Part shown: in pieces, positions 186 through 53,503 of the stretch | Layout: each line of letters begins with the position of its first letter | Numbering within the stretch: position 1 is the first letter of the stretch | Source of the DNA: Thalia democratica | Taxonomy: Eukaryota | Direction: 5' to 3' | Length of the DNA: 64,000 nucleotides | NCBI GenBank assembly: GCA_965202585.1 | Contig: OZ241831.1 | Location: 19,344,001 to 19,408,000, forward strand | Made by a program: the position numbers and the translations under genes | The notes under the pieces: generated by a model | Seen by the model: only the letters and a program-made list of their open reading frames with translations | Databases searched by the model: none | Told to the model about the DNA's origin: nothing

Positions 186-3100
186 CTTGTGTATTCAGGT
201 GGACCTAGATACGCTAGCAACGATACCATTTTCTCGTACGGCTTTTTTCCTACTAACTTAGCACTCCTATGAAACAAAAATTACAGTTTCTAAGTTAATT
301 ATCAAGTATTACAACATAAGCGCTTTAGAGTAATAATTTAAAAACCTTTTTGAACTTTTTCAAAACAGAGTTTCTTTTCTGTAAACCGTTTGAAGTATAG
401 ATAAAACTTTACCTTTTTTTATCTAAGCTTAAACGAAATTAATTTAAGTTTTATTTATTAAATGCTTAGTATTTCATCAAGGAGTGATAGTTTATTTTAA
501 GATTGACTAAAGTGATATATAAATATATATAACTTTTATTTGAAAAAAATTTAAAAAATTTATTTAATCTAATACTTAAAAAAGCTTTTTAATGAACACA
601 ACATATACTGGTATACCTATTTTTAGCAAGAAAGTTTCCAATGTTGCTCTGCTCATTCCACAGAAGCCTATGCAGTGCAGTTATGTTACTGTCATCTACA
701 TACACTGGTTTGTGAGAAGTTGTCTCATTTGAAGCTGACTCGGATGTTGAAATTTGCACGAAAAACCTTGCATAATTCAAATAATTACGCCAAATACTTA
801 AATATGTGATATACTTAAAAATATGTAGATAACAAGTTTTTAAACAATTTCTTTAGATAACATCTCGCGTTCAGTTGACTTGTGTGCTATGTTGGTCGAA
901 TTTAAACTTTAAAACTGTTACAAAAACATTGAATTCAAGATAAAACTGTATAAAAAGGTACATGACATCAAGAAAAAAGAAGTACAATAAATATATTTAC
1001 ATAAAAACTATAAAATTTATCTATATTTTTAAAACTGCATGCAAATAAATTTAGTTTTATTAAAACAAAATACATCAAAATAACTGTAACAGGGAAAAAA
1101 GTATTCTAATCGTCATGAAATCACCTTATTCTTAAAAAATATTAAAGCAAAAATAAAAACTGACTGTTGGCAAGCGTCGAATCTTTTACTAACAAATTCA
1201 TTAAAATACTTCATATGCTCTTCTTTGGTGAAGATCATGTGGTTTGCAATTGTTTGCAAAATCTGTTTTTGTTTAAAAAAATAAATTAAAATAAATAGGA
1301 GAAAAGCACTTTAAGATAATTGGCAACTAAGGTTTATATTTTGTTTAACAAGGAGAAGTATGTCTTAAATATATGTTTTTCTTTTTTTCAATGTTTAAGT
1401 AGTATATCATAAAAGCTTATACTAAATACCATAGTAAGTTTACTGAATTACAAAAAAAGCTTTATGTACAGTTTTATTTTTGTAACACAATTAAACCAAG
1501 TTTTAGTACAACAAAAAGTTTTTTAAAGGATTTCCAATATTATGATTTACATGAATAAAAACAGCGAATACGTTTTTTCAATATTTGTAAAGTTGTTCAT
1601 GCAGCGATTAAAGTACAGGATTCAAAAAAGTATATGATAAAAAAACTTTATATGTTAACTAAAAAATATTTTTTTAATATTTTGATTTTTTCATAACTAA
1701 CAACTTCTTTTTCAAATTAAATGCACTTAGTAGATTACTTTAGTTTTTTTTATCGTTAACAGGAAACAATATTTTTCTAAAAAATTTACTGGTCCTGTAT
1801 TGAAAACAAACAAATTTAAATAAACTTAATTTTCAATTGAAACAACTACACACTGAACAAGGTACGAATTAAATAATTTTAGATATACTTTGACTATATA
1901 TTTATAAAAATAATTTATATTAAATGAAGAAATAAATACTAAGAAGCGCCTTCTTAATCAAATAACTTTTACAAATTTATACGTAAGACATAAATAAAAA
2001 AACTACATTTCAACGAGTAAAAAGAAAAGTTTTCAAATTTAAAGACTTAAAAAACCATAAAATTACCAATAAGTACATTTTAATTAGTGATGTACCGGAT
2101 CCGGACTTTTTTTTTCAAATTAGGATCCGGCCGGACCCGGATAGTTATTTCAAATTAGGATCCGGCTGGAACCGGATCTTTTTTCATATCAAGATCCGGC
2201 CGGATCCGGATATCAGACAAAAATGGCAATATCCGGCCGGATCCGGACCGGATCTAGAATATAAATATACTATATTTTATTTAGGGAAATTTAGGGTTTT
2301 TTTTTTGGAAATTTGCAAAAATCTAGGGATATCTAGGGATATGGGAACCTTGTAAAGTGAGAATAAACTAGCCTGAGTCAGAATAAGTTTTTAAAAACTG
2401 AAAAAAAAAACTTTAATCTAATAATAAGTAGAAAATCACAAATTATTCATTCAAAATCATCATCATGATCAAAATTAAGATCAGCTCAAACTCATTCAAA
2501 ATCTAAAAGAAAACTAGCCTGAGTTTTTCAAATAATCTTAAAACTAGCCTGAGTTTTTATAAAAAACTAAACTAGCCTGAGGCAGCCTAAGGTTTTCAAA
2601 AATTCCCAAAAATTTTCAAACTAGCAGGGTTGCCACTGTTTAAGTCAAAAAAAAAAACTAGCTTGAGTGAGTATAAAGTAGCCTGAGTCAGAATAAGTTT
2701 TTTAAAAATTGAAAAAAAAAACTTTAATCTAATAATCAGTAGAACAGCTAGCCATAAGGTTGACAATTTGATAGTAAAGTTTTTAATTTTACAACTTAGG
2801 TGAAGAGTTGCATTTCTGAAATGTTTATTTCATAATTTCATTTCACGTGTACAATATGAGCCAATCACGGTAGGTGTTTAATTTTAACTGACGAAAATGA
2901 CTCTTTATAATTTACACAGATTTTGTTTTTGAAAAAATACTTTTCTGTATGCTCTTTTATACTAACTAGATCCGAATCGGCCGGATCTCTATTAGGATTA
3001 TTCTTTTTTTTAAATCAAGATCCGGCCGGATCCGGATATCAGACATTATTTATTTATTATCCAATATTGTTTGAACTGATTAATTTCGTATAGATCTGCT

Positions 3101-6100
3101 CATACAAACGTAAAATTACTTTGCACATTCCCTTGTATCCACGCAGCAAGCCGGGTGGAAGCTTTTTATCGCACAGCCCATTTTCAAAGGGGTTGACAAT
3201 GGCGGGGTTGAGGAAGCGAAGGAAGATGGTGCTCGCTAGCGCTCCGGTGCCCTTGTCCGGAAATCTCTGTGAAACAACCTGGTACAAGCAGTGACACACG
3301 CTCTTCAGCTGCGGAGGAAATCTGATGACATTTTAGGTTTTAGTTTTCGAGTGTTAATGAAAATGTGAGATCATTGCAAGTTTAAAAAAAAAAGTTTTTC
3401 TATGTGTATTAAAACAGATTTCTGTTTTTTTTTTAATTTTAATTGTTTAAGGACTAAAGAATATAACTGCGTTGTTACTAAAAACATTTTACATTATTAA
3501 ATAAATATACAAATAATGTTATAAGTTAAAACTGGAATACGACCAATGTTTTAAAAATCTTTTAAAATATCAAACAGTTTTTATTTTAGTTATACTGTTT
3601 TTATGAAACGTACTTTGTTAGTATTAAGGTTTTAGTTCAAAATCAATTAGTTCTAAGTAGTACTTAAATAAATTTCATAAGCAACTTAACAAAGTATAAA
3701 ACTAGTTTTATTATTACAAGCACTACTTAAACTTTTAATAAAATTAAAAAAACTACTACAGTAAGTCGTTTTTCCAAACTAGACACAACAAAAAACTATG
3801 CTTGATGTACAACAGCAAATTTTCAGCGAAAAAAGCAAAGTTTTAGACAAAACTATTGAAATAAATTCCGTTAAAAACTTCAATTAACTTGTCAGTGGAT
3901 CTCATTATACAGGTGAAAAATCTGTCAGCAAGACGCTGCAGGTTGTTTCGGCATTCCTGCAAATTTGCACCTTCACTGCTCGTTCTTCGCTCGTCCACCT
4001 ACAATTATGACAACTTCAGTATTTTTGATTATTTTTTAAATTAAGTAAACTAGAAAAAAAAACTTTGGAAATGAAATAAACTAAATTCAACCGTAGCAAC
4101 TCAACTGCTCTTAATATAAAACACTTTAAATTATTTAAAAATACTGTTTTTACAGTTTTTTATGCTTTGTTTTCAAAATTTTTTCATTAATACAAACAAT
4201 CTAAAAGCTTGATTATTGTTCAATAGGTGAACAAAAGACAAAAAAAAACTTCAAAAAAATAAAACTGGAGTTTCAGCCGGCTGAAGTTGCTTTAGAAACA
4301 TGAAAAAGCGGATTAACTGGGCGCCATGCTTCGACTTTTTGCGATCCCGAACAAACTCCAAACAAACACAATTACGTGCGCGCGCGAGACAAAGCTTTTC
4401 GCTTCCCTTTCTCCCCAGCAAGTCAGATATCGTGTGCAGGCGGCAAGTAGGAAGTTATTTGCATAGGAGAGGTGGGGAGAAAGCGGCGCGCAGCTGGAAA
4501 ATTTAATGGCGAACTGGAATGGCATTGAAGCAATCAAGCACTTGTTTCCGCTTTGAATTAGTTCATTGCAAGCCACTCGAAACACATTTAATTATTCAAA
4601 AAAGAAAAACGATTCGACTACACACAATAATATACGACTGCTTTCTTTAAAGTATAACTATAATAAAACTCTTAAATAGCATTAAACATTTAACACACAT
4701 AAGGAAGAATTCGTTTAGGGTATAAAAATGTAAAATTGCTTAAAAAAAAGTTAAAACATGTTAATTTTAAACTTAAACAATTGACGATTTTTTTAACAGT
4801 TTTTAACATCTTTTACGATTGATGTTTTATTAGGAAACGTTTAATTAATTTAAAAATATATCAAAACAACCAAAAAAAATCGGATAAAACATGTACATAT
4901 AATCACTGATAAAAGATTGTAAGTATTCACTAAACAATTACAAAAAAAGTCTAACAACAAAAGCTTTTTTATGGTTTAAGTAAAGTAAACATGATTAGTA
5001 ACTAAACTGACCTCAAAGTTGAGACCTGATATTTCGGGGGTGAGAGACCAAGCGACCAGAGGTTCGAGCAAATTGTGCAGGTAGCTGGCCCCGTAAACTT
5101 TGAAACAAAAAGTGGTTATTTTGCTTGCAAGGGTGCTACCCCTAAACACAGTGTGAACACCTACGTCCTCAACCTGCGAAAATATTTGATTTAAAGTTAT
5201 GTGGTGTATGAAAGTTTTTTAAAAAGTTAAAAGAAAAGGCCTAGTAAGATAAAAAAATTAATAAAACAAGTTTTAAAACTTATTATAATTGAAACAGTTG
5301 GAAGACCAATAAATAAACTCAATTTACTGAACAATTGTGTTATGTTAAATTTAGTTTACTTTATTATGTTATCAAAAAGTATAACAACAACTGCATTCAG
5401 TACAGTAACAAACCTCTTTTGAAAACATATTCCACAACAAATGATACAGCAGATGTTTTGCATCAAACAAAATCACAAAAACGCGAGCTAATTCGTCCTG
5501 AATAATCAAGTTAAAGGCTAAAAAACAAGAAATCAAAAAAAGTTCAAAAATTTAAACTTTAATAAAGCTAATAATTTTTAAAACTATTACTTATATAAGA
5601 ACATTAGTATATATTTTTCCTAATCTTAACTTTTTGGCTTCGAAAACTCTATACATTGCTTTTTTTAAAGAGTTAAGCAATTTAAGCAAAAACTGAATAG
5701 CGATTATTACTAATGAAAAAATTAAAAATTACACATTTATTATAGAGTAAAAACTGATCAACTAATAGTTTAAAAGCAAGTTTAAATAGATTACCAACAG
5801 TATGAAATGCTCTATAACAAATATGAATCAAATATTAATTACCTGATTGTACATATGAACCACGTTCGCTAACGCGTTTGCAATAGGTAATTCCCCATTA
5901 TCACCGAGCATTGTGACTAGCTCCACCAAGCGCTGGAACCTGTAAGTTGTGATGGTCGAGTGCAAGGCATCGAAACAACTCATCCCTCCCACTTCCCCCT
6001 GACGCAGTATCCTTGTGAGCACCTCCAACAGTGCAGTGCGAGTCCTAATGTCCCGTTTGTATGTCAGACCTGAACCAAATTGGTTTTCAACACGAGTATT

Positions 6101-27834: not shown

Positions 27835-30800
27835 ATGTCGAAGGAGGCATTGAAAATCGCTAATCTCGGTTCGACGTCTTTTTTCAAAAGACTGCCAACA
27901 AGAAAACCTCTTACTGATAAAGTAAGTAAACTGCTTGCTTATTTTATAGGAGATAAAACAACAAAAAAATTCTTTTGTTAAAATGAATTATGATTTTTGT
28001 AAACAAAATTATACCAAAACAAAAAACATTATTTTTAGTTCTATACAGTTGTTTTAAATTGTGAAAACATTTTTAGGTAAAAGCAGTTATACTTGACTGG
28101 AGCGGAACAACAGCTGATGCTCACGTCATTGCTCCTGCTATAAGTTTTTGCAAAGTTTTTGAAAAACATGGAGTTCCTATCACCATGGAGGAAGCTCGTC
28201 TTCCAATGGGTCTCAGGTTAAGTATATACAAAACGTTTTTAAACAAATATTTTTTGTTCAGGTTTATTTCTTGAAAATTATAAACAAACTTATTTTTTCT
28301 AAAAAAACATCCTTAAACTTACAGAAAACATTTTGTCATACATTAAAATACTATATAGTTTATTTTTGTTGAAAAAAAAATCTAGACCTTTTACATTGTT
28401 AGTTTTTGTTAAATCAACACGTATAAAAATGCTAACACTTTTAAAGTGTAAAAAGTATTTGACACATATCTTTAAAATAAACTAAGTGCAAGTAGACATC
28501 TTTATTTTTCTTCAACTGGATACAACTTTTAATAATAAAAATCCGAGTTCTAAAATAATTCGTTAATATAAATAATTTTATTTAGTTTGCTGTTTTATTG
28601 TATAGAATATTATATAGACTTATGGTAAAATAAAGTAATGAAGCTTAGTGGCATAGGTATTAATGATAACAGTAAAAGTTAAATTGTAAGTTTTAGAGAC
28701 TTAAAATTGCTCGTCGGACACACAAACAAAAAAATCAATTTTAGTTTATAGTTAGTTTTAGTTTGTATGATAAAGTTTTGTTCTGATTACCGCAATGTTA
28801 AAAATATTTGTAACTTGCTATGTAAATTTACAGCACTTTAAAAATATAAACCGCAACAACAATTTCTTGTTATATTTCCTCTATTAACTTTAAAGGAGTG
28901 TACAATTTGTATAAACTATTATTCTACGATAAATTTTCTTATCTTAAAAACCATATTGATAGCTTAAATTATGAAAGTATTGAGTTTTGTCTTTGGTAAA
29001 CTATAAGTTTGTTATGTTACAAAATACAAAGATAACTAGTGTTAAAGATAAAGTAGTGTAATATAAAAATATGCTTTAAATGAGTGTATTTAAAAGCAAT
29101 TAAAATCTATCTGTCCTTCAGTAATGACAACTTTGTGAAAAAATGTATAAATGAATCAAATTTTGTTATTACCTTGAACATTTAAGGTTACAACCAATGA
29201 AGTCTAAATTATATTATAATTTATTGATAAAACTTTGCTTCTTCACGTGTTTTTAAATTATAATAAAACAGTGTTTATTCAACTATCCGGACATGTTGGG
29301 CAAGATTTTTTGTAAACATGTCCGGATAAGTATTTTTCCGTATAAGTGTAAAAAACATTTTTTTTATAAAATAATATAAATACTGTATATTATGAAATGC
29401 ATAACAAATAATAAAAGCGTTATGTTAAAAATAAATAGTAATTATCAGTAATAGATAAAATATTTACAAATAGTAAAGCTAAGTTTCAGGTTTATTTATT
29501 TAATTTTTTTTAAGGTAGAAAAACATAAGACTTACTAACCCTCTGCAACGAAATACGTTTTTTGAGGGTCAAACAAGTAAAATTCATCGTTTGTTATTCC
29601 ACTTGTCCTAACTTTCAATTTATAAAAAGATTAATTTTTGTTAAATGAAAATTTTGAGTTAAATTTATCTTTAAATACAAAAAAAAAAAAAGAAAAATAT
29701 GTAAACCTATCTCTCTTAACAAAAAAAAAATCAGACATAAAGAAAACCGGAAAACTTTGACTAGTTTAAAAGTTTTTTTTCACATTTTATATTTTAGCAG
29801 AAAACTCACGAAATTTAATTAATTAAAAATTTTCTTAAACTTAAATATTTGTATCAGAACAAAAATTGTGTACTTAATAGTGAATTTAATTTGAAATATC
29901 TTTAAGACCGAAACTGTCCGGATAAGTGAGCGTCCGGATAAGTGAGTAAGCACTGTACTAGTATTATGTGTTATACAGTTAGTACATAATTAAACAAAAC
30001 TTTTTATCTAAATTAATAAAACAATTAAAACAAAAAACCTGTGACCAATTTAATTGTAGTATTAATCTGTTTGCAAATGTTATAACTTTTTTAAGTACCA
30101 TCTTTCACGAAATACAAAATTACTAAAGAAATAAAGTTTCATCCCGAAATTAGAAAATAAAATTTAGGAAAGACTTACACATTGGTAAAATTCTTCAGAT
30201 GAAGGATGTGAAAAAAAGATGGAAAGATGCAAAAGGAAAAGAACCAAATGAAAGCGATGTTGATAAAGTTTTTAAAGTTAGAAACTAGTTTTATGGTTAG
30301 CTACAAAACTATGCACAGCCAAAGAAATCTTAGATCCAAAAAGACAGCGTAAAGTATTTTATCGAAATTTTAGTAAATAAGCTAGTTCGGTTATCAAAAT
30401 TAAGTTCGTTTGATAATTAACTTTAACTTTTTAAAGTTCAATAACAGGTCTATTTTTTAAGTAGTTATAGTACGTTTTATGCTTCTTAGAGACTTTTTTA
30501 CTTATTTAACTTTGATAAATAAAAAAGTCTTTTTTTTACTATTAACTTTGAAAGTTTTGTTTAAATTATAATATAAAAAGATTAAAATATGCTAAGAAAT
30601 GTTTTCAAACTAGCTAAAACTACTTTTAACAAATTAAAATAAGAACAAATTAGTTTTGTTTTTATAAGTATCTTAATACAGGATTTTGTCCCTATGCAAC
30701 TTGATTGTTTGCCAGAGTATACAAAACTTATTCCAGGAGTTTCAGAAGCTATCAATTATCTTAAAAAAGAGCGAGGTATAAAAATTGGTACTTCGACCGG

Positions 30801-33800
30801 TTTTACTAAGGTTAATTTTAAGGCTGCAAATTTTTTTTTTGTTAGTTTGTATGCAACTTAAACTAAATGAGCAGTTTTTTTTTTATAATCTAATTATTTT
30901 GAAAAAAAAAACACCTCGAAAGTAAGTTAGTTTGTATAAAAGTTATATTCATGTATATATGTTCGTTACAATGTATTATCTGCATTATGCAAATTTCAGT
31001 GCCTTTTAGCTATTTTATTACAGAGTGTACAATAATTACGGTTTTATCAATTATTAGCGATGTTCAAATATCGAAATAAATAATACAAGACTAGAGAATA
31101 AGAATTAGCATGCTAAAAAATGCTGAAAACAGTTTAAATTGAAAAGTTATACTAGAATTTAAAGAAAACTTTACAAAAAAATTAATATTGACATTTTATT
31201 AAACTTATATAGTACAAATTTAAAAGGTTATGTCCGACATACTTCGAGAAGCGGGTGAACAACAGGGGTTGGTCCTGGACAGTGCGGTTGCAGGGGATGA
31301 AGTTGACAACAACATGGGTTTCAGACCGGCTCCTTTCATGCTGTACAAGAATTTAAACAACATGGGTGTTTTTCCAATTGAGTCTGTTGTCAAGGTAGTT
31401 TGTTTTATGTTAAAAATTAAAAAAAAAGGTAGAGTAATTTCCATAATTTGAGCAATACAGAACGTGTTATCTTTATGAAATAACTTGTTTAATTGAATGT
31501 AATGTTAGAAGACTATTTATATGAGAAACGGATTTATGCTTGAATAACTTGATTAAATATATAAACTTCGTTTAAAATATTTAATTATCAGAATATACAT
31601 ACTGTTTTAGAAAGAAGAAAATTAAAAACGATAAACCTAATAAGTTAAAAAAACATAAATAGTTTCTTTTTAGATATATTAATAAAAATTAAATAAATCT
31701 CTAGAAAGTTAATTTTTTCTTCTAGATAATTATTTCGGCAAAAGAGTATTTAAGATTTAGACATGTTAGAAAGCTTTAAAAAATATTTTTTATGTAAACA
31801 CCTAAACTTTACAGCATCTTCGTATATAATTTATCACATCTAAAAAAAGTATCTTTCCGGTAGTTTATGTTAAAAATTTATGTATTAAACACTTTACTTA
31901 CTTTTTTTTTCTTGTGCTTCAACGTTTAAAAAAGCAGAATGCTGGATCAAAACCTTCATTTCTACATACTTTTAATAAATAAAGGTGGATGACACAGCAG
32001 GAGGGGTTGGTGAAGGTTTGAGTGCAGGCTGTTGGTCGGTAGGTGTCGCTGCGTACTCAAACTACACGGACGTTAGTAGTTTGGAGGAGTGGGATTCTAT
32101 GAGTGAGGAGGAAAAAGAAAAAAGGAGGCAAATCTCAAGGTTAATGTTAAGAAATAGATACTCATAAAACCTAGTTAGATTAAAGATTTGTTGGTATCTT
32201 TTTTTTTTTTTCATTTTCTACTCTTGTGATTATACTAAATAAAGTAAACAACGCCTTATTTTAAAAAAAAACTATCTATTTGTACAATTTAATCATTTCA
32301 TGTAGATTAGTAGCATAAAGTATAATTTTTTATGTAAAAATTTTAAAAGATAAAATTCTTAAAAGTATATAAAACTGCCCAAAGTTAATCAATATAATTT
32401 AATTTATACTAGTGAAAGATAATACTTGATTGATTTATAACTGATAAAATAATTTTATATATTTATTATTAATTAGTTTTTATTAAATAAGCAGTAAACT
32501 ATGATCATAAATTTTTTTGAACTTAAATATACACTTATAAGTATATCAGTAAAATACCACATTATACATAACAATGGTATTAAACAAAAAACTTCATTCG
32601 TTTAAACAAAAAATAATACAAGCTTAAAAAAGTATTATGATATATTAATAGTAGATACATTCTGTTTAGTAATTGTTAACAGTTTTATCAACACGAAATG
32701 TATTTAAATAGTTTTATATTAATAAGCTTATTAATTATAACCGTCTTATTTTTAGCTTTTAACATATAAAATGCAAACGATAAAACAAATATTTTTATTG
32801 TGCACACTTTAAAACCTACTACTCAAGCTCACGAACCAACTTATTTAGTTAAATTTAGTCTACAATAATTTACGTTTACAATAAATCGATACATTTGTCT
32901 ATTTTAGTTTATGTTTAACCCTTTTGTTCATTTCACTATTGCCTTCCAAAGTAAAAGCACTCTCCAGGTAAAATACTGTTGTCTTATAGTGAAGAGAACA
33001 GGTTATTAAAATAAACTGATTCTCTTGACTTTTTTTAGTATAAATCTTACTATTTCACTATTTTTTGTCTTCAAGTTTATTTATACTAAACTAAGTATTT
33101 TATTTGTTCAGAGTCCATAGTTTATAAATATTAACTAGTTCAGAATTTAAATCCATAGTAGATTGTTTTTAATAGCTACTAATACTAATAAATAAAAAAT
33201 TGTTTAGTAAGAAATTTTTAATAAGATAAAAGTGTATATAGTTTTTAATAATGTTATATTTGATAATCAAGTAACATATCTGAATATCAGCACTTAGTCT
33301 CATATTATTGTCGAAACTTCTCTAGTTGTGATAAAAAACATTCTTCAATATTATTTTTTTTTTTTTTGCGTTATGAAACAGAACACATACTAATATAGAA
33401 CTTAAATTTTTACTTGTAAAATTAGGGTGTATAACACTTAAATTAATACTAAACTACTCTTAAAACCTTGCATTGTTTGTTTTTGTATATTAGAAGTAGT
33501 TTCAACAAAAAAATTTGCAAAACTTCTTTGTAAATTACTGATTATACGTCATTCGTAATTTAGGCATGACAGTACTAAAACTTCTAAATTGTAAACAAAA
33601 ACACGTCAATTATCTACATAAAAATAACTTTAAAAATAACCTTAAGAAATACTAACAATGGTAGTTGTAAATATAATTTTCATACTGTAATACAGCTTCA
33701 ATAAAAATTAAGTGCTTATTTTAAAAGTTGAATGTTTTGTGTAACAAAAAACAATAACTTCGGAACTAAACTTTAATTTAAACAGCTTAGAAAAAACTAT

Positions 33801-34020
33801 GTTTCCATAAATATCTATTTAAAAAAATGTAAAATAATTTAGTTTTTATAAAAATAACTTTAGCAAAAACTTTAAAATGAACAAAATTTTAAAAGTATTA
33901 AAATTTTGCAGAGAAAAGTTATTAGAAAGTAATGCACATTACGTAGTGGACAGTGTAGCTCAGTTGCCGCTTGTTATTGAAGATATTGAAACCCGAATGA
34001 AAAACGGAGAAAGACCTTAG
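27835..34020 (+). CDS. phnX: Phosphonoacetaldehyde hydrolase (phosphonatase, HAD superfamily), 298 aa, 7 exons
   Basis: Exons 27835-27921, 28077-28216, 30168-30276, 30682-30810, 31227-31394, 31985-32139 and 33912-34020 (TAG) are all GT-AG and in phase. Motifs: VKAVILDWSGTTAD (HAD motif I of the phosphonatase type, second Asp absent), EEARLPMGLRKDLH (Schiff-base Lys), KIGTSTGF, FRPAPFM, VVKVDDTAGGVGEGLSAGCWSVGV, and a C-terminal AHYVVDSVAQLPLVIEDIETRMKNGERP. Confidence 0.95.
29269..29955. mobile_element. Tc1/mariner-pogo-like MITE in phnX intron 2
   Basis: TIRs cagtgtttattcaactatccggac versus the reverse complement cagtgcttactcacttatccggac (4 mismatches in 24). TA follows the right end (29956-29957); the left flank is aa. 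Confidence 0.75.
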
Positions 34021-34087
34021 AAACTTTCAATTATATCAAACTTTTATAGACATTTTGATCAGTTTAAATTTCTCTTTTTCGTCAAGT

Positions 34088-50600: not shown

Positions 50601-53503
50601 AAAACTATAATATTAGTCAAAAATTAATTAACTTTAAAATTAAATTAACAACAAATATATATTACAGAAAAAATAAATAAATTTTAAAATTTTACAACTA
50701 TGCAAATAAAAAATAAATTTCTTGAGCACAGATTAGTTTGCTTCATGTGATAATAACCAGAGACAAGCGACTGAAGGTACTTGAGTGGTAAGTAAGCCAG
50801 TACTAGTGAGCAGTTTTTACTACTCACACGGCGTGGCCTAGCGTGCCCAAGCCAAACACACAGCCATGAAAACTTATTAACCGCTCGTTCTTATGTTTAA
50901 ACGTTGTCACACTTTAAAGTGACTGGTGTTGATTTTAGTAATTATATTCAATTACTGCACGTTTAAACGCCAATTGCAAAGTGCGTGTATTGGCTAATAC
51001 GTGGTAATAATAACAGTTATGACACGCAATAGAGCACAAGTAAACTTTAAAAATAACATTATAAATAAGGACAATTTTTTTGTCAAAAGTTAAAGATAAA
51101 CACTTATAACAAATTAATTAATCTTAGTCCTAAACATTAATTAATATTTTTGACAGCAAAATAACTCAAACAATTTGCTGCAGAGAACGAGAAAACTTAA
51201 TTGATAGCAATGGGAGCGTTCAGCTCAAGCCTTAAAAATGTTGTTTTAAATCGAAACGAAATAATTTATGTGCCACTCTCCGGCAGCCACAACGCACATA
51301 ATTTGCAGCGCACACACAGCACACCTTTCCAACGACCCTTCCTGTTTGCCTCGCAACTATTCAACCGCGCTTTCAAACGCACTTTCTCAAAACACCGCGA
51401 AGCCGCCAACGGGAGTGTTTCGAGCAGATAATCTTTTGTCGAATAGAAAAACTCCATAAACAATCAACAAGTTCGTGACGCACACATTTCATGTTATATA
51501 TTAAGTGTTTGCTGAAAACTTGCTTTATGTACACGATATTTCAAACGTGCATGAGTATCAACTTTAAGACTTTTAAAATTTTAGCTGAATGGTGCAGAAA
51601 GGACTTCCTGGTACTTTTCATGTAGTCATTTAATTTTTCGTGGAGCAGTTACGTTTCTCCTTCCTTTTAAATTCATATATGAAATATATGACACACAATG
51701 ACATACGTAGGTGGAAAATTCATATTCAAAATAAACTACAATTGAAGTTGAAGCCGTGTACTTTTTCGATTGGTTTTACGTATAATAAAAATTAGAATAA
51801 ATACTTCGAGTTTCAGATTAAACATATAAGTAGTTTAATTTGAAAAAACTATCAAAATAATTTCATGTTTGCTTATTTTAACTCATCTAGAAGTCAATTT
51901 TCGAATAACATAGAAATAGTGTGTAACTTTTATTTTTTTAAATTTCACTACCAAGATTTTAAAGCTCGCCTAAAATTCAACCTCAGAACAAAGAACAAAA
52001 CATCGCCAGTTGATTAAAAGGAAGCGTCGCAGAGGCATAAAGAAAAGAAGCTTATGATTTCATGTGATGCTGGAAAAACCTAAAATGCAGTTCTTTGTTG
52101 TGAAACGTTGATTTTGACAGGCCAGGCGTGCATTGTTGTGCAGTGGGCAAAACAAGATGAAAAGTTTAAGGTTTGCCAGATCACAATTACTTCTTATCTT
52201 GAAAGCCTCGCAACACAAGTGCTTGAGTTATGTGAAACAAAACGAACGGCATCTGAAAAAGTCGGCCACAAGCATGCTACAAACTTACTTATCAAACACA
52301 ACTTCAAGAAACTTTATTTTAAATGTGTCTAGTAGATATCTATGCGGAGTATAAAGCTTAGTAATAAACTTGGTTACATAAACATGAATACTAACTGAAT
52401 TCAATAAAGAGATGTGTTTTAAAAATATTTCATAACGTATCTTATTTTAAGAAACACGGTAATATGGTAAGAAACAAACTAAAAATAAACAAATAATAAA
52501 ATATCCTGTAGAAACTAATTTTGTTAATTATTGTTATATTAAACGAAAGAAATTAGAAACCGTTTGATTAATTAAAAAAATAGTGCTGGCAAAATTCGGA
52601 ATATTGTAAAATAACTACAGGTGAGATTACAATTTTTCATAATTATATTACAAAAAAAGAATAAAAAGTCAATTATTATAAATGTTACAAAAGCTTTTAA
52701 TATTTAATAATTTTAAAATTCAAAAATAAGGCATTATGATTTTTTTTATTTAACTTGTTTTAAACAAGATTATAGATAACAACATAATTTTTAACATTTT
52801 ATAATTTTAACAATAAACACTAGTTTGAAAATTAGAATCAACTCAAAATATACTATGTAGAGCAACTGAAATGTATTAACCTGCTGATCAGATAAGCTTT
52901 CTATTGCGTTGATCACAGACTGCTGAGTTCCTTGAACAGTTGACTATTAAAAATATAACATAATTTAATTAAAAAGATGATTAAATGAAAATGTTTAAAA
53001 TTTTAAACTTTAATATGCAAAATTAACTTACAGAAAAACCACTTTCTATTGCAGGTAAGAGCCTCAATTCACTTCCTTCACTAACACCATTGTCCTCTAA
53101 CGTTCCATATGTTAAAACTCTGTAAAATAGTAAAGTATGAAACTTTGATGCTAAAAAATAATATCAAGTTGGTTAAAAAAACTATTTAAAACTAGTAGAT
53201 TAGAAAGAAAAAAAATTAACACTGTATTTTTAGTTCTTTTTAGACAAAAGCAATTTGTTAGAGAATACTAATAAAACAAGTGTTACAAGTGAATTTGTAA
53301 AAAAAAATAATTATTTACTTTTCTCTAAAAACTATTTTGAGCTTTTCTCCAGGCATTTGAAGGTGTCGAGCAATTTTTCTTCTTAGTTGAACAACAGTAT
53401 CTTCCTTCAAAACTTCTAACTGAAACTTACCACCAGTTGTTGGACTTATAACAACATTTACCTTTCTATTTGAATTGTATTCAGCATTTATTGACAAGTC
53501 CAT
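35653..53503 (-). CDS. MIDN: Midnolin orthologue (Ubl + Catch1/Catch2 + C-terminal helix), 760 aa, 14 exons
   Basis: Exons 53319-53503, 53032-53119, 52881-52943, 50253-50436, 49929-50136, 49325-49788, 46860-47035, 45526-45670, 42832-42938, 41384-41476, 38366-38396, 37422-37568, 36504-36790 and 35653-35757 total 2283 nt in phase. Ubl: [32 protein letters not shown]...[13 protein letters not shown]. Catch1: [43 protein letters not shown]. Catch2: [56 protein letters not shown]-terminal helix: [27 protein letters not shown]. The low-complexity linker exons (especially 38366-38396 and 37422-37568) are inferred from phase and splice signals and are less certain. Confidence 0.93.
40499..40654. repeat. 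~50-bp unit x2.3 flanked by a 14-bp direct repeat
   Basis: The unit aaactttgtatcaaaaaagcctttgctcactactggttggagcactctt is repeated from 40527. aaattgctaaaatt occurs at 40499-40512 and 40641-40654. Confidence 0.85.

Follow-up and report, generated by a model that had tools for sequence, protein, structure and literature searches.

A sizeable part of the organic phosphorus in the sea is phosphonate, which microbes are regarded as breaking down. A locus in the genome of the tunicate Thalia democratica raises the question of whether an animal can carry out this breakdown itself and, if so, from where it obtained the gene. The window analyzed here is a stretch of 64,000 nucleotides (contig OZ241831.1, positions 19,344,001 to 19,408,000 of the forward strand), and coordinates given without a contig are those of the window. 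On its plus strand, at 27835-34020, a preliminary description made from the letters alone had recognized an intact phosphonatase gene with six introns. We are highly confident that this is a genuine, expressed orthologue of PhnX, which would make it a functional tunicate nuclear gene for phosphonoacetaldehyde hydrolase (EC 3.11.1.1), an enzyme of the HAD superfamily.

The rebuilt coding sequence (CDS) joins seven exons into 897 nt, encoding 298 residues and a stop codon, and all six introns have GT..AG borders, which confirms the complete open reading frame (ORF) described at the outset. The GC content is 41% in the CDS, 22% in the introns, and 27% in the whole window, with the intron AT content in line with that of the host genome. 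The exons are arranged as follows.

27835..27921, plus strand: exon 1, residues 1-29, beginning at ATG; N-terminal peptide conserved in tunicate orthologues.
28077..28216, plus strand: exon 2, residues 30-75 and 2 nt; HAD motif I with the nucleophile Asp36 (28095-28097), and also the PMGL loop of the cap domain.
30168..30276, plus strand: exon 3, residues 76-112; Schiff-base Lys77 (30169-30171) and His80 (30178-30180).
30682..30810, plus strand: exon 4, residues 113-155; HAD motif II Thr151 (30796-30798) and Phe153.
31227..31394, plus strand: exon 5, residues 156-211; motif III Arg188 (31323-31325) and a two-residue insertion (NNMGFRP) typical of a tunicate/protist/giant-virus clade.
31985..32139, plus strand: exon 6, residues 212-262 and 2 nt; motif IV Asp213/Asp214 (31988-31993).
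33912..34020, plus strand: exon 7, residues 263-298 and the stop codon TAG at 34018-34020.

A search of sequencing runs with a 6.3-kb stretch of the locus returned four RNA runs belonging to one study of marine metatranscriptomes, together with DNA-like runs. Each of the four RNA runs held 8-13% of the sampled words of this stretch, which is about the exon share, and the DNA-like runs held 92-95%. Three of the RNA runs, from three samples, and one DNA-like run were mapped on 28040-34030. The RNA contigs leave out exactly 28217-30167, 30277-30681, 30811-31226, 31395-31984, and 32140-33911, and one of them (X2, 913 nt) carries exons 2-7 unbroken. The spliced joint 28216/30168 was seen in RNA contigs, and exons 3-6 likewise have RNA joints. 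Furthermore, the RNA overhang before 28077 equals the final bases of exon 1, which supports the first intron and hence all six junctions. Thus, the check by RNA proposed in the preliminary description found every predicted junction in use. At the other end, an RNA contig extends beyond 34030 into the 3' untranslated region. The DNA-like run (X5) is continuous across the introns, without any spliced joints. One odd joint (30272/30680, with "CA" between) corresponds to the predicted junction plus two synonymous differences. The differences that separate genome and RNA contigs within the CDS are synonymous without exception (7/7), which fits purifying selection in a natural population.

To place the protein in a family, the exon translations were scanned singly against the NCBIfam equivalog model for phosphonoacetaldehyde hydrolase, TIGR01422 (cut-off, 220 bits). 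Exons 2-7 lie collinearly on model positions 1-46, 48-83, 84-125, 128-178, 180-226, and 231-251, with scores of 55, 28, 36, 30, 40, and 11.5 bits, respectively, which total about 201 bits with the split codons excluded and compared with a whole-protein cut-off. TIGR01422 was the top family for exons 2-6, the related PcrP model scored slightly higher for the short exon 7, and Pfam returned only faint generic HAD matches on these short pieces. Full-length relatives sharing 54-75% identity with the window protein (P0279, Styela, Patella, and Perkinsus) reached 280-283 bits on TIGR01422 (282 for Patella), and a partial Ciona savignyi entry reached 244 bits. Additionally, a local hidden Markov model of 80 bacterial PhnX sequences gave the window protein 411 bits and its relatives 410-419.

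The exons were also aligned to the solved Bacillus cereus PhnX, with exon 2 matching its residues 6-51. Within PMGLRKDLH, the alignment is direct up to B. cereus Leu51, and Lys77 and His80 then stand at the matching spacing. The resulting residue map is given below, with the B. cereus residue first.

Asp12: window Asp36 (DWSGTT), the HAD motif I nucleophile; kept.
Met49/Gly50: window Met73/Gly74; kept.
Lys53: window Lys77; kept.
His56: window His80; kept.
Thr126: window Thr151 (motif II); kept.
Arg160: window Arg188 (motif III); kept.
Asp186: window Asp214 (motif IV); kept.
Ala14: window Ser38; differs.
Cys22: window Val46; differs.
Tyr128: window Phe153; differs.
Gly185/Asp190: window Asp213/Gly218; differs, in the Asp-Asp form of motif IV.

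Asp12, Lys53, and His56 have been named as catalytic residues of phosphonatase (PMC11203657). The Schiff-base Lys and the His of the cap domain are the features that separate phosphonatase from HAD phosphatases, and both are present here. The nucleophile in DWSGTT and the Lys in PMGLRK, pointed out in the preliminary description, were both found in place, and its assignment to PhnX is favored by the best family of exons 2-6 and by the retained catalytic residues, with no other HAD subfamily preferred. Moreover, bacterial loci of this PhnX subtype have a PhnW homologue directly upstream in 43 of 80 cases, an arrangement that matches the classic phnW-phnX phosphonatase operon (PMC3266647), and the subtype as a whole thus appears to behave like a true phosphonatase.

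The spliced window protein was compared by BLAST with all fetched relatives, and the identities are listed here.

Three metatranscriptome contigs of about 1 kb: 74-75%, full length.
Ciona savignyi H2YCL5: 71% over 247 aa.
Styela clava "phosphonoacetaldehyde hydrolase-like": 66%, full length.
Perkinsus: 61%.
Plasmodiophora: 59%.
Sinanodonta: 57%.
Patella: 54%.
Bacterial metagenome-assembled genomes (MAGs), more than 50 PhnX listed: 54-61%.

A search with the Styela protein added Ciona intestinalis (RefSeq, "phosphonoacetaldehyde hydrolase-like") and Clavelina lepadiformis, and no non-tunicate animal was among its best 120 matches; PhnX was found in all sea squirts sampled. The 29-residue peptide of exon 1 is conserved across tunicates. 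The window, Styela, and Ciona intestinalis agree in the position and phase of all six introns; consequently, the gene already had its introns before the sampled tunicate lineages diverged, and a tunicate source of the window is most likely on this evidence as well. None of eight intron positions is in common with Perkinsus, nor is the single one of Sinanodonta, and the Patella gene is intronless.

At one site in exon 3 (30240-30260), after a conserved Pro-Asn/Asp, the window protein is missing four residues relative to all other tunicate orthologues and has the length of the protist and bacterial proteins. A search of protein collections with exon 5 returned solely a 63-aa fragment of the same PhnX, and by this search the full 298-aa protein is seemingly missing from them.

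The preliminary description had found no phnW partner in the window and proposed a genome search, which located the partner on another contig, C9. Models of PhnW returned one multi-exon locus (C9:11020289-11030059) with six exon matches, each best to PhnW models, a summed NF010006 score of about 312 bits (cut-off, 296), and the SANKC motif of the pyridoxal phosphate-binding lysine. The N-terminal TPGP motif is encoded by a further exon upstream, at C9:11017803, so that the locus spans C9:11017803-11030059 (L013, L014), and every junction has a GT-AG solution that keeps the frame. An exon-level six-frame search of the genome gave no candidate for phosphoenolpyruvate (PEP) mutase (TIGR02320, Pfam PF13714), and an exon-level search gave none for the phosphonopyruvate decarboxylase Ppd (TIGR03297); the same method recovered the exons of PhnX and PhnW. 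The presence of PhnW and PhnX, with PEP mutase and Ppd not found, points to catabolism of 2-aminoethylphosphonate (AEP) rather than its synthesis.

The TIGR01422 profile search of the genome returned only the window locus and a weak, unrelated HAD match on contig C5 (C5:31034671). The latter was rejected as a second PhnX, being a phosphatase-like ORF of the DxDG type; its source is a single-exon HAD ORF of 232 aa at C5:31034446-31035144 (L004:1276-1974), with DMDGLL as motif I.

In the two-step phosphonatase pathway, PhnW would turn AEP into phosphonoacetaldehyde, and PhnX would convert the latter into acetaldehyde and phosphate. If the mechanism follows that of the bacterial enzyme, the cap-domain Lys77 would bind the aldehyde group of phosphonoacetaldehyde as a Schiff base, Asp36 would then attack the phosphorus with Mg2+ held by Asp213/Asp214, and the C-P bond would break, with acetaldehyde and then phosphate being released. 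The substrate phosphonate would be taken in with filtered food and degraded rather than made. The activity of the enzyme, the origin of its substrate in food, and its role in the animal's physiology are inferences. We judge the canonical reaction, together with PhnW and on dietary AEP, to be likely, and the animal can probably break down dietary AEP.

Where the tunicate gene came from was approached with two unrooted trees, one by FastTree (146 rows) and one by IQ-TREE (LG+C20, quick search; 76 rows), for which most rows were metatranscriptome contigs and only the best 120 matches per search entered the view. Both gave the same picture: the window protein lies within a tunicate clade (Shimodaira-Hasegawa-like approximate likelihood ratio test [SH-aLRT] value of 100) that is nested among Perkinsus, Plasmodiophora, Reticulomyxa, MMETSP/EukProt, metatranscriptome, and giant-virus-like contigs, with weak support inside the eukaryote clade (80-94). 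The two mollusc PhnX proteins group with bacteria, beyond a starred branch from the tunicate/protist/viral clade, and forcing tunicates and molluscs into one clade cost 89 log-likelihood units (approximately unbiased [AU] test, p=0.003, for a clade chosen after the tree was seen). Tunicates, protists, and a giant-virus contig have the two-residue insertion ahead of the Arg of motif III, which the bacterial and mollusc rows lack. The grouping of Patella and Sinanodonta with bacteria indicates an origin separate from that of the tunicate gene, and the trees point to at least two separate PhnX origins in animals.

The explanation toward which we lean, with reservation, is that the tunicate stem received the gene horizontally from a protist or a giant virus of protists, after which the six introns were gained and the gene was kept; molluscs would have received a bacterial-type PhnX separately. 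It draws on the nested position of the well-supported tunicate clade across the starred branch from bacteria and molluscs, on the rejection of a single tunicate and mollusc clade, on the confinement of the insertion to tunicates, protists, and giant-virus contigs, and on the lack of non-tunicate animals among the best 120 matches of the Styela protein. Giant-virus MAG contigs add to this, since their closer PhnX copies are 54-66% identical to the window protein, as does a coral study in which PhnX is listed as a horizontal transfer from dinoflagellates to Anthozoa (PMC4878875). The missing root, the modest support within the eukaryote clade, the prevalence of metatranscriptome rows, a limit of 120 matches that could miss other animals, and the naming of the AU-tested clade after seeing the tree all hold this transfer reading back.

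Vertical descent of an ancient eukaryotic PhnX into animals, with retention in tunicates and loss in most other animal lineages, is possible and in our view rather doubtful. The breadth of the eukaryote-type clade with tunicates inside it and the age of the six introns agree with such a history, which nonetheless requires many independent losses and finds no intron position in common with Perkinsus (0/8). Fungal, choanoflagellate, and other animal sequences are absent from the close matches, and the copies of molluscs fall among bacteria. It is because the trees are unrooted, with modest inner support, that we rate both histories with this caution. The preliminary description allowed for either ancient vertical inheritance or an old transfer; the gene is indeed old within tunicates and groups with protist and giant-virus PhnX rather than with that of molluscs or bacteria, which answers the question in part.

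Several loci met in this comparison have features of their own. The giant-virus-like contigs with the same PhnX subtype (L097:6001-6912; L108:6001-6819; L109:3032-3850; L110-L113) also carry genes for MutS, a Pox_A22-like resolvase, and RING and TRAF proteins, along with numerous ORFans; a search for PhnW up to 6 kb from PhnX on the giant-virus contigs found none. IMG/VR contains eight viral PhnX loci, six of which are labelled GVMAG. In Perkinsus olseni (L101:460-3591), an EF-hand gene is directly upstream of PhnX, and a P. chesapeaki database protein (P0288) is a 504-aa EF-hand-PhnX fusion, which may be genuine or may come from a gene model that merged two genes. Among the molluscs, the Patella vulgata PhnX is in one exon (L016:10001-10855) and that of Sinanodonta woodiana has one intron (L102:8001-15725).

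A further alternative, which concerns function, is a drift of the protein toward some other HAD activity, for example that of a phosphatase with a different substrate, and a loss of C-P cleavage. The replacement of B. cereus Tyr128 by Phe and Cys22 by Val could be read in this way, as could the residue two positions after the motif I Asp, which is Ser38 rather than Ala. However, the phosphonatase-specific Schiff-base Lys and His are kept, the PhnW partner is retained in the genome, and the same substitutions occur in bacterial members adjoining phnW. The equivalents of Phe153 and Val46 are invariant in a 13-sequence alignment (A1) that includes bacterial members, and being common to the whole clade they show that Tyr128 and Cys22 are not family-defining. 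In addition, the PhnX-like model TIGR03351 scores far lower than TIGR01422 in the relatives scanned (54-70 versus 244-303 bits). We therefore hold such a drift to be improbable.

Some points nevertheless weigh against a functional phosphonatase acting with PhnW in AEP catabolism. Two active-site shell residues of B. cereus are not kept (Tyr128, now Phe153, and Cys22, now Val46), the fit of the window protein to TIGR01422 is a matter of exon sums and proxies rather than a direct whole-protein curated score, and no enzyme assay of any animal PhnX was found in the literature. The RNA evidence consists of assembled contigs and thus speaks to splicing and not to expression level or tissue. The C9 PhnW, apparently an intact gene, was identified in genomic sequence, and the absence of PEP mutase comes from an exon-by-exon six-frame search of one assembly.

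The gene lies 19.3 Mb into a large contig (C7), and two genes flank it within the window.

3060-3299, minus strand: RasGAP exon.
53318-53503, minus strand: ubiquitin-like exon.

These exons fit the NF1 and midnolin neighbors named in the preliminary description, which had argued for a domesticated nuclear gene. Contamination, an assembly artefact, or a dead relic can be set aside, since the six spliceosomal introns are covered by spliced RNA and have the AT content of the host, animal genes stand on either side deep inside C7, two further tunicate genomes have their introns at the same places, variation is only synonymous, and nothing was found in favor of it. Regarding microsynteny, the ubiquitin-like exon and other downstream ORFs had no tblastn match in the fetched flanks of the Ciona and Styela genes. 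Intron 2 contains a high-copy repeat (29294-29945), with a DNA-contig word depth of 1,900-28,000 versus about 100 alongside; GTCCGGATAAGT motifs recur within it in either orientation, and it probably represents a small transposon.

The family, its chemistry, and its fold are already well known from bacteria. The tunicate orthologues of Ciona, Styela, and Clavelina are already named in RefSeq and UniProt, mollusc genes are annotated, and a coral candidate has been published. The novelty rating of the preliminary description was consequently too high, and the value of the locus lies in the comparative picture. No paper linking PhnX with tunicates (Ciona, ascidians) was found in the searchable literature, and a 2023 review describes phosphonate metabolism in eukaryotes as still cryptic (PMC10574752). 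If tunicates have PhnW and PhnX as an expressed, conserved pair, abundant filter-feeding animals could on their own free phosphate from C-P compounds. The separation of the tunicate from the mollusc PhnX, along with the giant-virus copies, also makes the repeated transfer of a gene into animals tractable for study. Put together, a tentative scenario, to which we give slightly less than even credence, is that tunicates have a complete AEP-breakdown pathway whose PhnX came from a protist/giant-virus pool before their lineages split, and that molluscs (bacterial type) and corals (dinoflagellate type, according to the published coral study) acquired theirs independently. In that case, marine suspension feeders would have repeatedly gained the ability to mine phosphorus from dietary phosphonates, with giant viruses as a possible carrier.

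Compared with known systems, the closest are the tunicate entries (Ciona intestinalis, Styela clava, C. savignyi H2YCL5, and Clavelina lepadiformis), which are orthologues with the N-terminal peptide in common; their names are automatic annotation, no experimental work on them was found, and the window protein alone is without the four-residue stretch of exon 3. The mollusc PhnX proteins of Patella vulgata and Sinanodonta woodiana are also animal nuclear genes passing TIGR01422; unlike the window gene, they belong to the bacterial clade, are without the two-residue insertion, and are only 54-57% identical to it, and their introns are either none (Patella) or one at an unrelated position (Sinanodonta). 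The coral PhnX (PMC4878875) is likewise an animal PhnX with a proposed protist source, from another phylum and with a sequence outside these trees. Among bacterial enzymes, Achromobacter PhnX16 and PhnX19 share with the window protein the G185D and D190G changes, a pattern that occurs in purified, active phosphonatases, and a non-Cys residue at position 22, whereas they are encoded in operons and induced by glyphosate (PMC11203657). Nine of 12 B. cereus active-site residues are unchanged in the Achromobacter enzymes, with changes at Cys22, Thr126, and Gly185 (PMC11203657); Tyr128 is thus apparently kept in them, unlike in the window protein. Finally, the window protein differs from the B. cereus PhnX (PDB 1FEZ, 1RQL, 1SWV) in Phe153, Val46, and Ser38, in the Asp-Asp form of motif IV, in a 29-residue N-terminal extension on its own exon, and in its six introns. 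Both nevertheless have the same HAD core and helical cap, are collinear over the whole length, and carry the nucleophile Asp, the Lys of the PMGLxK loop with the His that follows it by three residues, the Thr of motif II, and the Arg of motif III.

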